64,000 bases of DNA from Chlorokybus atmophyticus (Eukaryota > Plantae > Mesostigma and Chlorokybus algae), in NCBI GenBank assembly GCA_009103225.1, contig RHPI01001037.1, positions 962,912 to 1,026,911 of the forward strand. The letters run 5' to 3'. The translations under genes and the position numbers were made by a program. Under the pieces are notes generated by a model that made no database searches, was not told the DNA's origin, and was given only the letters and a program-made list of their open reading frames with translations. Below, piece by piece: positions 17,690 through 23,193 of this stretch. The first letter of the stretch is position 1. The number at the start of each line of letters is the position of its first letter.

Positions 17690-19040
17690 AGACGCCAGAA
17701 CTTTAAAGGACGCTTTCCGGTAGCTTGCAGGTGTAGTTCAAATGGCATTTGCAGTGGTTCACACAAGGTAGAACATGCCAACGTGGCATCAAATGTTGCA
17801 GTTAATATGTGTTAGTCAGTCACCTTATGCGGCAGGTGGAAACTCATGTGTCTGGTTTTTGGACTTCATGGATATGCCACCATGCTTGCGTTCATGTTCT
17901 TTGTGGTATGTTGCACAAAAGGTGTATGTGTACCCGATGCAATGCGTGCAACCTGCATGTAGTTAACTATGGCAGACATGCAGGTTACAAGCAATGTTTT
18001 GGGTACACCACAATGTAAAAAAGGCAAGCATATTTGTAACCTGTATGTCACAGTTGCACGACATATGATGGAAAATGCATTACTTATGCAGCTACAGCCA
18101 TGATACCAGGACTAAGCCAGCCTTCTCATTGGCGTGTGTGATTCGAAACACTTGGCAAATCAATGCCTCTCTTCTGGTGAAGTTTGTGCTACCAGCGGTT
18201 TGCCTACTGACTCCGAATTGCGAATTTATACTTGGCAGTCGCAACTGAGTAAATGGCAGCGGCCACAGAATGAAGCCAAAAGCACTGCGTCGCTGCGCTG
18301 GTGGCATATTGTGCAGAGTGCTGCACGCGTGCATCGAGTGCCGTGTAGAGGCAATGCTTTGTGACGTGGGCAGAGATGCGCAGTCCTCGACTGCATGTGC
18401 CTGATCCCGACGGCAGAGGAGGATGTGGTCCTCGCAGGCGCTGGGGAGCGCGGGTAGTTGCGTGCTAGCGTGCTAGTGTGCGCCGCTGTCGCGTGGCTCT
18501 GTGCAGGACGTCATTGCTGTTATGTGTGCGCTTAGACAGCCATGGTCATGACTGGTACCCACTGTACGTCTGTGCTTAATGCCAAGTAGTTTGCATGATG
18601 CCTGATGTACGTCCTAGTCATTCAGTTGACGACAGAGATTGTGAAGAGCTTGTCTGGTGCCATGTTGTTGAGGGATAAGTGTGCTTTGCCAATATTCAAT
18701 CAGCATGCAACTGCTTTCTCAGCAGCCTACGCGCTGACAAGGGAACAGAGAATATATGTGACAGCAGCCTTGCAGCATACCCTCTTTTGTACACCGCTTG
18801 GACTGCCGGCAGTACAAGCAATCATAACACCCTCACTTGCAACCTAACATCCACACTAACCTGATACCAGTGCACCATGCATTGTCCAACTACAGGTAGT
18901 GTCCAACACTATCTAAGCAACTCAGCGAAAGCCGCATCAATGCGATGCTTGTGTCCTGCAACCATGTTGCATATACCGAATGCCACGCTAGGCTAATAAA
19001 CACCAGGCAACGGCATAGAAGCGCCTTGCACAATCAAGAG

Positions 19041-20425
19041 TTAGGGTTGCTTAACCAAGTCACAAACCTGGTCTGCAAGCGCCGCTGCTGTATTGTTCTT
19101 GCCAAAAAATTTGACAAACTCCCCTTGCGGATTCACAAGGTACCTGCGACACGCAATGCAACAAGCGTGATCACTAAGGCACAGGCAATACAACGAGCAA
19201 ATGTTGCATAGCAGTACAGATGATGCCTCACATGATGATAGAGTGATCCACCAAGTAGTCCTTGGTTTCATCTGTCTTTGTGTAATACACGCGGTACGCC
19301 CGTGCAGCCTCCTTTACCGATTCAACTGAGCCGGTAAGGCCAACCAACCTGGGATGAAAGTCTGCACCGCCATGGCAAGCATGAGCAACTTTGCTGACTG
19401 AAAAATTTGCACCATGCATGCCTACCTTTCACATACTCTGCAACTCTTTGAACCGTGTCCCGATCCGGGTCGACAGATATGAACACGGGGAATATCTTCA
19501 CGCCACATCGCTTTTCTGTATAAACCGATGGTGTATGAGCGCCACCATATTACATTTACAGCAGCTCACTTTGCGATTACTGCATTGATTTCTACACTGT
19601 CTTCACAGCACAACCCAATGTACCTATCAGGTTTAAGGCTTCAGACATCTTCACCAGTTCATCAGGGCAGATGTCGGGACACAGCGTGAAGCCAAAGTAA
19701 AGGAGGGACCATTTACCCAGCAGGTCCTTATCGGAAAAGGCATTTCCGTTATGATCTATCAACTTGAAGGGACCACCAATAGCAGCTTGGCCAACTGATG
19801 CGGTGGACGTGACAGCTGCACAAGAGAAGTGAATTCGTTGCATCCAGATGTTATTGGTGTCACAATTGTGCACCAGTAATGCGATGCTAAATGTTGATTA
19901 GAGTACCTTGAAGTTTCTTTTGTCTCTCGCGGTCGAAGAGCACCACCAGTCCCCCTGTAGTCAACGCCAGGAGCCCGAAACTCAACCAAGTCACTGGCTG
20001 AGCACACAACATCACAAGGTACACATGAGAGCTGACACAAACCCGGACACCTTGTATACATAGTTGATACCCAAACTGCTGTCAAGCACGCAGAGGCTTC
20101 CACAAAGGACACGCTCCCTTGCGCAGAGTGCGTGCATTCATGCAGCGAAGCAAACAAATGCAAAAGTGCATGTATGCATGCAGGGGTTGGACTGCACTGA
20201 GCGCCATGCAAACTGCATACAGCAGCTTACGGAGGTTTTGCGGAAAGGTGCTGCTCCAGCAGGCGGTGCAACCTTCGAGTACATGCGCGCAGGTGCTACT
20301 TGTGCATGAGCTTGGCAGCAGGCGACAGGCTCAGACGAGCGTGGCGCAAACGCAGACGTCTGTGCTTGGTCACGAACCAGCCACCGCCGCCTTGCCAGCT
20401 GTCGTGCAACAGCTTGCCAGGCCAT
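19041..20425 (-). CDS. SCO1: SCO1/SenC (HCC1-type) mitochondrial copper chaperone for cytochrome c oxidase, spliced
   Basis: Presequence [69 protein letters not shown] (CxxxC), [36 protein letters not shown]. Confidence 0.96.
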
Positions 20426-20460
20426 GATACTACTACCCTGAGCTATGAAACAGTGCGTGA

Positions 20461-20709
20461 TTAAAGGTCCTGCTGCTTGCCCTCCTGGAAGTCCTTGGTG
20501 CGCTCCTGGAAGGCCTTGTCGGCCTCGGCGATGGCCCGGAGCCTGCCGGCGAGCTCCTCCGAGCGGCGGCGGTTCTCCTGCAGCTCCGGCCTGATCCACA
20601 CAACGTAAGCCACGACGCCAGCAAGAGCCCAGGCGGCAAGCCCCTGACCACCAAAACCCACCGACTGCGACACTAGCTGCCTAAACCGCCGCCCAGCACT
20701 CCCCGCCAT
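20461..20709 (-). CDS. Small single-pass membrane protein (82 aa, intronless), resembles a conserved uncharacterised plant family
   Basis: MAGSAGRRFRQLVSQSVGFGGQGLAAWALAGVVAYVVWIRPELQENRRRSEELAGRL. One TM (LAAWALAGVVAYVVW) followed by a charged helical tail; GC-rich coding-like codon usage. Similarity to a plant family (xWxxAGxxAYxxWxKP) is from memory and not database-verified. Confidence 0.75.
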   Translation of the reverse strand: MAGSAGRRFRQLVSQSVGFGGQGLAAWALAGVVAYVVWIRPELQENRRRSEELAGRLRAIAEADKAFQERTKDFQEGKQQDL

Positions 20710-20904
20710 AGGCTTCAGCAAAAACTTTAATCCGCCTCTGCCGTCGCCGCCGCCGCTTTCTTAGTGCCGTTGTCGTCGTCGTCGTTGTAGGCTTTGTCGG
20801 CGTTGTTGACGCCTGCTTTGTGCGGGGTTCTCTCCGCAGCTGGTGTCTTTGTGTGCACAGCTGCCTGCTGTGTGGAAGGGCGGCGGGGACGGCTGCAGCT
20901 GGCA

Positions 20905-23193
20905 ATGAAGGCCAGAAGGAGAGCGGTAGAGGAGGAGGAGGAGGAGGAGGAGGAGGAGGAGCAGCAGGAGGAGAGGTTTGAAGGAAGGGCTGCTCGGCGC
21001 GGCAGCGGCGGCAGCAACAGGAGGAGAGGGGGCGAGCTAGGGACGGGTGGGAAGCCCAGTGCCAGGGAGGAGGACGACGAGGAGGAGGAGAGCGACGGAG
21101 ACGGGCAGCGAGCGGATGGCGACGAGGATGCGAGCACCAGCGGCAGCGATGGTGGTGAGGTACGAGTTCTAGCAGGGCTTGACAAGCTGAGAGCCGGAGT
21201 TGGCCTGTACAACTATCTTGCCCGCCGCCGATTATTCCACAAGCACTGGTTTCTACAGAGAAGTTGCGCGTGTTGCTTACATGTCACATTGCTTGCGTTT
21301 CACATTGTTATGCATTAATCAAGTAGCAACAAGAGTTGTCAAAGAACTGAACATAGTCTCTTCCGTGCTTGCGGGCACCCCTGTGCAGTTGCGTTAGTTG
21401 TTTGTTTGCGTGGTCTACATAATCGGTAGACCGATCAACTGGCATGTTTGATAGGTGGGACTGCCTGTTAGTTTTTTGCTGCAATTGTAGACGATTACAG
21501 TATAATAGCGCATTTAGGTGTGGGGACTTGCAAGTCTTTGTGCTTGGTACCCACCCACAACGCAGCCGCGTGCAGATCACACAGTGACATCTCATAGAGA
21601 TCTCAGGATCCCATTAATGACAAACCTCACTGGCAGTCAGAGGGCGACGCAATGGAGAGGGAACTGGAGGCCCAACTAGCCGAAGTGCCCTTTGAGGAGC
21701 TGGAGCTGTTGCGCCAGGATGGCCGCACTGGACCCTCTACCTTCCAGAGACTCGCGTCAAGCATGCGGAAACTGCCCAAGAAGGAAGACCTGAAAAGAGC
21801 TAACAAAAACAGGTTTGTAGCTGGTGACGTCATGCTTCATGCTGTGACTGACAAGTAGAGTGGTTCTGCGCTGCGTTATCATTCATGCAGTACTGTACTG
21901 AAGTCACGTACTCTGCATAACTGTGCTTGATATGATATTTGTGCAGAGTTCAGAGCTGTTGAAGAGCTTGCAGAACAACAGCTCTTGGCACTACTAGGTC
22001 ATTATGTTTTAGCGTTCATGTGTACTTGCAGGCCGCAAGAGTTGTCTTCAAAACGACCTGTCCCGCGATTCCGGGAAGTCATTTCACTGCCAAAGGTGGA
22101 GCATTGGCTTGTTATAATTGTCACCACCTCGAGTCGAGTTGCACACTGCACAAGCATGGTCTGACATCGTGCTTGACATTGTTCTTGAACAGGTCGGTCA
22201 GGATCCCCGCTTTGATGATACGGTGGGGCAGTTCGATAAAGACAGGCAAGTATCCAATCAGCATGTGTGACTCATATAATAAGCATTCTGTTTGGGTCGA
22301 CCGCCTCTCTCACGCCTTGTGTTGTCGTGAAAGACATGTATCAGTAAGTTTGTTGCTTGAATTGGAATTCATGCCCTATCCTGATTCTTTGTCAACAAGT
22401 AGACAGCTTATCTCACTAATGGCGATTGTAGGTTCCGCGCACAATACAAGTTTTTATTTGACGAACAGCTACCGGCTGAGAAGCAGGTTGAGTTTTGAAG
22501 CTGGATAGAACGCGCTAGCGCTAACCTGTCGCTATATTGCTGACCGCATTCTTGCAGAGGCTAAGTGCTGAGATGAGCAAAGAGAAGGACCCTGAGCGGC
22601 GCGCAGAGTTGAAGGAAGCCTTGCAGCGGATTGTAAGTGCTCGTCTGGTCAGCGTGTGTTGATACCATGCACATTCCATCTGCACAAGTTGGCTGACAAG
22701 GCTCTTATCACAGAACAACCAGCTGAAACAAGAAGAGCAGCGGCGCAAGCAGCAGACGCGTCTGCAGGAGATGAAGCACAAAGAGAAAGAGGCTGTTAAG
22801 TCGGGCAAGCGACCCTACTACCCCAAGAAATGTGAGTGCGCATCAGAACCTCATATACCAGGCTGCTTGCTTTGATGTTGCCAGTATGTGCATCATACTG
22901 GTTCTTGACTTGTGTTGGTGTTACAGCTGAGCTACGGAAAGCGCTGCTGCTGGACAAGTACAAGGAGTTGAAGGTGAGCGTGTGTCTGCTTGATTGAAGA
23001 GATTGTAATGTTGTGCTGGCATGTGCCAGCAGATGCTGTGATGCGTGTTCCCAGCTGTAGCCTGTTGGGCTGCTATTGATGTGGTTGCGTCATGTAGGAA
23101 AATGGCAAACTGGACACCTACCTGGCAAAGCGCCGCAAGAAGAATGCTGCCAAGGATCATCGATACGTCCCATACAGAAGTCAGAAGTCATAA
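20905..23193 (+). CDS. RRP36: rRNA biogenesis protein RRP36 (DUF947), spliced
   Basis: Acidic N-terminus. KRANKNRPQELSSKRPV, DPRFD, FRAQYKFLF, EAVKSGKRPYYPKKSELRK..DKYKELK, KRRKKNAAKDHRYVPY. Confidence 0.92.

Follow-up and report, generated by a model that had tools for sequence, protein, structure and literature searches.

Polycistronic nuclear loci have been catalogued in chlorophyte algae, with 87 in Chlamydomonas reinhardtii and 173 in Chromochloris zofingiensis (Gallaher et al. 2021, PMC7896298), and that study stresses assembly factors of respiratory complexes (LYR proteins) among the proteins encoded on bicistrons. In Auxenochlorella protothecoides, leaky scanning on bicistrons was established in vivo for the TOM22 and OST4 loci (Duenas et al. 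2025, PMC11892635), and the same paper discusses the CDC26_TTM3 bicistron of plants and green algae, a pair conserved across both. For Chlorokybus itself, no account of nuclear polycistrons turned up in a search of the literature. Here we describe a candidate locus of this kind in a 64,000-nucleotide (nt) stretch of DNA from Chlorokybus atmophyticus (contig RHPI01001037.1; hereafter the window), in which an open reading frame (ORF) for a small membrane protein, ORF1, lies directly upstream of SCO1, the gene for a mitochondrial copper chaperone, on the minus strand. A preliminary description of the DNA had proposed that a single mRNA makes both proteins. On balance we favour a partially polycistronic locus, in which a long bicistronic isoform would exist alongside an isoform that encodes SCO1 only.

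The layout of the locus is compact. ORF1 is intronless and comprises 82 codons on the minus strand (20709..20461), from an ATG at 20709 to a TAA at 20463-20461, and a minus-strand spacer of only 35 nt, containing neither an ATG nor a poly(A) signal (20460-20426), separates it from the SCO1 ATG at 20425. Two ORFs thus share a strand, each with its own start and stop and with a short inter-ORF region, which is the layout of polycistronic loci in Gallaher et al. (2021), and their frames differ (offset 284 nt, remainder 2). The ORF1 start lies in the context aagcctATGg (C at -3, G at +4) and the SCO1 start in agtatcATGg (A at -3, G at +4); judged by the bases at -3 and +4, we graded these as weak and strong, respectively. 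The 281 nt between both starts (20706-20426) hold no ATG in any frame, so that a suboptimal first context, a strong second context and the lack of an AUG in between together give the leaky-scanning signature of Duenas et al. (2025). Neither TGTAA nor AATAAA, the two poly(A) signals scanned, which may not be the host's own, occurs on the minus strand of 20760-20231, and the sole near-signal is an ATTAAA at 20731, upstream of ORF1. The motif scan thus revealed no poly(A) signal after the upstream ORF, and among the RNA contigs presented below there was none with an A-tail or a loose end at that point. The preliminary description had listed the same elements, i.e. a short intronless ORF of 82 codons with its stop at 20461, the SCO1 ATG at 20425, a 35-nt spacer free of TGTAA and AATAAA, roughly 280 nt without an ATG between the starts, and a C at -3 upstream as opposed to an A at -3 and a G at +4 for SCO1, and each of these was found to be correct.

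Mononucleotide shuffles of the 281 nt contained 3.3 ATG on average, with zero ATG in 2.7% of the shuffles, and of the 2906 ATG-free gaps in the window this one ranked 11. Since all three frames of the minus strand are open across most of 20690-20461, the length of ORF1 by itself is weak evidence for a gene. The two longest ATG-free stretches of the window, on both strands within 20531-21282, flank divergent start codons, and this region includes a long GAG/CTC repeat encoding the Glu-rich tract of the neighbouring RRP36-like gene.

Stronger evidence for ORF1 came from its relatives. A phmmer search of 1.84 billion representatives, which recovered relatives of equal size whose alignment with ORF1 extends from end to end, returned ten matches, nine of which carry a core motif, (Q)NLAAWAVAG..AY.LW.RPE, and seven of these nine (54 to 134 amino acids (aa)) align across the same segment as the query. 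All residues that are invariant in the alignment (A1, n = 9) are kept in ORF1 (A25, A26, W27, A30, G31, A34, Y35, W38 and P41). The core motif coincides with the single hydrophobic helix of ORF1, residues 21-39, which is also the best 19-aa hydropathy window, and a charged helical tail follows. Against a family profile built from 15 relatives, with the window sequence excluded, ORF1 scored 46.8 bits (E = 1.6e-13), and the next best of the 1365 six-frame ORFs of the window reached E = 0.026. The profile match takes in the N-terminus, the helix and the charged segment behind it; the first 19 codons align with the N-termini of the family, with M1 aligning to M1 of the Myrmecia protein. A profile search collected 64 family members, every usefully named one of which is a "hypothetical protein", and the named sources comprise Closterium, Sphagnum, Marchantia, Calypogeia, Diphasiastrum, Klebsormidium, Chara, Myrmecia bisecta, Trebouxia and Tetraselmis. 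The earlier reading of the upstream ORF as a gene for a small membrane protein agrees with the hydrophobic helix, and the conservation that had been named as a check on it is provided by these 64 members.

Codon-position composition pointed the same way. GC contents at codon positions 1, 2 and 3 of ORF1 are 0.73, 0.48 and 0.83, and in the second half of the ORF all 41 of 41 third positions are G or C, with 0.38 at second positions; this pattern of uniform third and low second positions indicates a reading frame under constraint. The third-position value of 0.83 for ORF1 (1.00 over the second half) is close to the 0.78 of exon 1 of the RRP36-like gene, but SCO1 as a whole reaches only 0.55 and its exon 1, a mere 35 nt from ORF1, only 0.50; codon usage therefore changes sharply at the spacer. 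Judged by its sequence, ORF1 is a genuine conserved protein-coding gene and no chance ORF, and its family is predicted to consist of unnamed single-pass membrane proteins of 80-100 aa that range from chlorophytes to mosses and lycophytes.

A Pfam search with ORF1 and nine relatives gave sub-threshold noise only and no Pfam family, a profile search of the PDB with the family likewise gave noise and no related solved structure, and a word-index protein search with ORF1 produced no candidate, the exhaustive HMMER search being needed. Exact look-up of the 82-aa and 86-aa products found neither in the public protein sets searched, and ORF1 thus appears to be unannotated; a nearby intronless gene was likewise not on record by exact look-up. 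Among language-model look-alikes, clusters of streptophyte hypothetical proteins at 0.95 are consistent with the family, and SMIM20/MITRAC7, COX6C and SMIM8 at 0.86-0.89 are regarded as leads only, from which we draw no function. In many family entries (P0031, P0036, P0037, P0040, P0042, P0047 and others) the protein begins at MQNLAAW, QNLAAW is preceded by unrelated residues, or the sequence breaks off after RKV. Conserved introns of the family probably lie at both points, before QNLAAW and after RKV, and would have been read through by ORF-based calling; ORF1 of the window has neither of the two.

To assess transcription, contigs of four runs (X1-X4) were compared with the window at 90% identity, a threshold that is probably too strict to recover SCO1 contigs from X3 and X4, which represent diverged lineages; runs listed as "RNA?" were taken to be RNA because their contigs are spliced. 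The pattern of runs, with one run from a 2013 multi-organism study and one 2021 study, fits PMC8611356, and the runs of the 2021 study bear a common organism label yet differ by 1-10% in sequence. X1 yielded one contig of 1405 nt at a word depth of ~139x, which lies on 18692-20652 and is spliced at five GT-AG introns. The contig is unbroken and free of mismatches over 20231-20652, which takes in SCO1 exon 1, the spacer and 192 of the 249 nt of ORF1. A contig of X2, from a separate study, lies on 20377-20572 without mismatches and also crosses the spacer. Depth is even across the spacer within one contig, and RNA that runs unbroken through this region argues against both a separate SCO1 start in the spacer and a 3' end after ORF1. 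Of the claim that one mRNA serves both ORFs, the part concerning the spacer is thus supported by contigs of two runs and two studies, but none of them reaches the ATG of ORF1.

Several observations weigh against a bicistronic mRNA. Beyond 20652 the X1 contig continues as four untemplated G (CCCC on the other strand) followed by read-1 adapter sequence of 24 letters, AGATCGGAAGAGCACACGTCTGAA, so that the loose end of this contig looks like the 5' end of an RNA within ORF1, where 20652 (minus strand) opens codon 20. No contig in the four runs lies over 20653-20805, which leaves the first 57 nt of ORF1, with its ATG, uncovered, although assembled contigs cannot prove transcript starts and coverage holes prove nothing. 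If 20652 were the sole start, ORF1 would be untranslatable from this locus and the AUG-free stretch would be an ordinary leader. The depletion of ATG is regional and partly compositional. This GC-rich, repeat-bearing locus also holds the longest ATG-free gap of the window, a minus-strand stretch of 570 nt from 21282 to 20709, and the second longest, a plus-strand stretch of 371 nt from 20531 to 20905. SCO1 was absent from the bicistronic loci in the accessible portion of the supplements of PMC11892635, and it is not named in the main text of PMC7896298. Finally, SCO1 stood beside a member of the ORF1 family at 0 of 46 other places. These comprised 42 fetched loci and four places without DNA, drawn from the NCBI genomes of Myrmecia bisecta and Trebouxia, from Logan and ENA contigs and from 30 JGI metagenome loci; tblastn with SCO1 covered L001-L040, and L041, L042 and the four places without DNA were judged by gene tables. 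The search for the same pair in other genomes, proposed in the preliminary description, thus came back empty at 46 of 46 places, and because the pairing is absent there, conservation gives the bicistron no support. The ORF1-SCO1 pairing is thus lineage-specific.

The end at 20652 was examined further. The 2021 Chlorokybus study (PMC8611356) gives this adapter for its stranded poly(A) libraries. In such stranded libraries the end of a read at this adapter is the 5' end of an RNA fragment, and the fact that the adapter junction was assembled over the genomic continuation, beside a deep contig, suggests a pile-up of 5' ends at 20652. Extra G tend to be added by reverse transcriptase at capped ends. 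The genome has T at -1 (20653) and G at +1 (20652) relative to the apparent end, which fits a pyrimidine-purine initiator. We regard an RNA 5' end, and with it an internal start, at 20652 inside ORF1 as probable. An mRNA starting there cannot make the small protein, since 20652 is the first base of codon 20, and its first AUG is that of SCO1. A SCO1-only mRNA that starts inside ORF1 thus probably exists. The proposal of one shared mRNA, which a start within the small ORF had been said to count against, is weakened by this finding; as it comes from the end of a contig, it does not overturn the proposal.

These results can be reconciled if ORF1 and SCO1 constitute one compact minus-strand transcription unit with two kinds of mRNA, the reading that we favour. 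ORF1 has no room for a 3' end of its own, and any mRNA starting above 20709 would consequently run into SCO1 and be bicistronic. A conserved and constrained gene must in turn be transcribed from above 20709, and with RNA continuous into SCO1, the mRNA of ORF1, if expressed, would be bicistronic. On such a long mRNA most ribosomes would start at the first AUG, that of ORF1 with its C at -3, and the remaining ribosomes would scan 281 AUG-free bases to the strong SCO1 AUG, i.e. by leaky scanning. A second start at about 20652 within ORF1 would give the SCO1-only mRNA with an AUG-free leader of 227 nt, which would be dominant in the one deeply covered RNA sample. The data establish that ORF1 is a conserved coding sequence, that RNA continues from SCO1 into it and that the sequence signatures are in place; the long isoform, the translation of both proteins, the leaky scanning and the promoter shared with the RRP36-like gene we infer. 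More tentatively, and with rather less than even confidence, we suggest that the choice of start site at the bidirectional promoter could act as a switch, in which an upstream start would give mainly the small protein and a little SCO1, and a start 57 nt inside ORF1 would give SCO1 only. If this were true, the protein ratio would be set by transcription initiation rather than by start context alone, the locus would rank with the earliest nuclear bicistrons to be documented from a streptophyte alga branching before land plants, and the partner of SCO1 would come from an unnamed family that may act in mitochondria.

Other ways of making two proteins from this region were considered. A fusion, read-through or a 2A mechanism is ruled out, as the frames differ and ORF1 ends in TAA, and so is an N-terminally extended SCO1, the SCO1 frame being open upstream but lacking an ATG. 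The predicted fold of 20400-20760 is not unusual (z = -1.66) and gives no sign of an internal ribosome entry site (IRES)-like structure, and no IRES activity was reported in such inter-ORF spacers (PMC11892635). A scan for bacterial-type promoters and terminators was empty and is not relevant here.

The most serious alternative to the two-isoform reading, though an unlikely one, is that the locus expresses SCO1 alone from about 20652, the DNA of ORF1 then being promoter and 5' leader and ORF1 a silent copy, e.g. a processed, intronless retrocopy inserted into the promoter region of SCO1, of a working gene elsewhere in the genome. It would account directly for the adapter-marked end with its untemplated G as the sole RNA 5' end seen, and for the lack of contigs above it in four runs, and the 227-nt AUG-free leader would need no special explanation. 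A retrocopy would also be in keeping with the lack of introns in ORF1, as opposed to its intron-split relatives in Myrmecia and Trebouxia, with the many ORF-based calls of relatives that break just before the QNLAAW motif, and with a C-terminal motif that has diverged to DFQEG from the DPQxxG of the family. A silent copy would, however, hardly be expected to keep all nine invariant family residues as well as an N-terminus and start codon that align with the family, nor to show strict third-position GC with low second-position GC, which indicates constraint at the protein level. Moreover, no second family copy is present within the 64-kb window, and the 5' end on which this alternative draws is again a contig end, which cannot prove a start site.

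The opposite case, in which every SCO1 mRNA starts above 20709 and the end at 20652 is an artefact of library or assembly, we consider improbable. Possible causes are a stop of reverse transcription in the G-rich stretch at 20662-20641, just above and around the end, polymerase chain reaction duplicates of one short fragment, or the clipping of a short 5' extension as an assembly tip, and the inability of contigs to show starts or of coverage holes to prove anything would suit it too. It would also agree with the chlorophyte loci described in the accessible parts of PMC11892635 and PMC7896298, which are exclusively polycistronic and have short leaders. At ~139x, on the other hand, a true continuation should have beaten a 28-nt adapter tip, but it was the adapter path that the assembly retained, with no contig upstream of it. 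The bases at 20653 and 20652 moreover fit a pyrimidine-purine initiator. Very improbable, finally, is a pair of overlapping monocistronic mRNAs, with ORF1 polyadenylated in SCO1 exon 1 or intron 1 and SCO1 started at 20652. The internal 5' end fits it, and nothing else does: the region 20760-20231 has no poly(A) signal, no A-tailed contig or loose end was found there, and depth remains even across the spacer within one contig.

Outside Chlorokybus, the family gene has introns and stands alone in Myrmecia and Trebouxia. A tail-to-tail arrangement of this gene and an amine oxidase gene recurs in Myrmecia bisecta (L001:5001-11302), in Trebouxia (L002:5001-10463) and in a metagenomic alga of 75% GC (L038:6001-9830), and in the latter two a gene for a Y-family DNA polymerase (IMS domain) is found just past the amine oxidase. 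This amine oxidase neighbourhood is conserved in trebouxiophyte-like algae and is unlike that of the window. In a compact metagenomic alga (L041:3309-7369), a family member of 60 aa shares its strand with an RBR-type E3 ligase gene, whose stop precedes its start by 73 nt, and lies 555 nt upstream of a gene for a mitochondrial ATAD3-like AAA ATPase; this is a further tight arrangement on one strand.

The downstream gene was defined by the RNA contigs as six exons and five GT-AG introns. Coding exon 1, encoding a presequence-like N-terminus, spans 20231..20425 on the minus strand according to the RNA contigs and the spliced translation, and the contig joints of X1 and X2 place exon 2 at 19907-19997, exon 3 at 19624-19815, exon 4 at 19426-19515, exon 5 at 19230-19361 and exon 6, including the stop codon, at 19041-19141, all on the minus strand. 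The RNA contig adds a 3' untranslated region at 18692..19040 (minus strand), which extends to the contig limit, an end that does not prove a poly(A) site. Besides its presequence-like N-terminus, the spliced product of 266 aa contains a membrane anchor, the copper motif CPDIC and a DHS with the distal His. One exon alone matched SCO1-SenC (PF02630) in Pfam with E = 4e-18, in agreement with the name SCO1 given in the preliminary description, and the product shows the thioredoxin-like domain, CxxxC motif, distal His and N-terminal membrane anchor of the SCO1/SenC family.

Upstream of ORF1, a region of 195 nt without an ATG on either strand (20710..20904) extends from ATG to ATG between ORF1 and a divergent plus-strand gene, and is a putative bidirectional promoter. 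A promoter common to ORF1 and this neighbour would fit the 195-nt divergent geometry and is likewise putative. Exon 1 of the neighbour, with an acidic Glu-rich tract, is located at 20905..21157 on the plus strand, as judged from the spliced translation and from a joint at 21157/21635 that occurs in three runs. Two of its exons had no match in Pfam; the gene is tentatively called RRP36-like after motifs in its spliced product. Runs X3 and X4, whose organism label is that of X1, differ from the window at many mostly silent-looking sites in the RRP36-like gene (21019-22800), and in place of 22096-22554 they have 103 other letters, possibly because splicing is different or because the lineages differ in an exon. 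At the other end of the locus, a plus-strand neighbour convergent with SCO1 (18406-18589) is matched by X2 and X4 contigs that show six mismatches, lack 11 nt at 18480 and carry an A-tail after 18589, and these contigs appear, from their differences, to derive from a paralogue or a diverged lineage. The depth of X1 over 18406-18589 is very high (~560).

Provided that the long mRNA exists, the two-protein mRNAs of the green lineage would gain a gene pair that is missing from the main text of PMC7896298 and from the portions of the text and supplements of PMC11892635 that were searched, and loci that give two proteins from one mRNA would extend to an early-branching streptophyte alga. The bicistron aside, the locus contains an unannotated gene whose family of small membrane proteins is conserved but lacks a name, a Pfam entry and a solved structure. 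This family is evidently overlooked or wrongly called by gene finders, many of its database entries beginning inside an intron. The possible internal start also calls for caution with bicistrons called from sequence only, because an AUG-free "ORF1" may equally be the leader of the downstream gene.

Set against the loci catalogued by Gallaher et al. (2021), the ORF1-SCO1 locus shares an upstream ORF that is small and encodes a genuine conserved protein, separate starts and stops in different frames at a very short inter-ORF distance, the lack of a poly(A) signal after ORF1, and a mitochondrial assembly factor, SCO1, as partner. It differs in that the sole 5' end seen lies inside ORF1, the pair being known from its sequence and from RNA contigs, and in its host, as the catalogue is chlorophyte and Chlorokybus is a streptophyte alga. 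The chlorophyte precedent invoked in the preliminary description (PMC7896298) comes from a group other than the one to which this alga belongs. With the bicistrons of Duenas et al. (2025) it has in common a weak ORF1 context followed by a strong ORF2 context, a small membrane protein encoded by ORF1 and, as at TOM22, no AUG in ORF1 or the inter-ORF region; unlike in those bicistrons, leaky scanning is here suggested by sequence signatures, and an internal start may make it unnecessary for SCO1.

ORF1 also resembles the conserved-peptide upstream ORFs (CPuORFs) of plants in that it encodes a conserved peptide and precedes a main ORF of the same strand. The peptide of a CPuORF is conserved together with its main ORF. 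The ORF1 family, in contrast, is free-standing elsewhere, with introns and other neighbours and without SCO1 (0/46 places), and ORF1, with 82 aa and a membrane helix, looks like a protein in its own right. As no SCO1 was found near family members at these 46 places and the pairing is specific to this lineage, ORF1 is ruled out as a CPuORF of SCO1. The CDC26_TTM3 pair differs from ORF1-SCO1, which was found nowhere else among the places examined, but it demonstrates that two-protein nuclear mRNAs exist in the streptophyte line. ORF1-SCO1 is thus a plausible new case of the bicistronic layout known in green algae.

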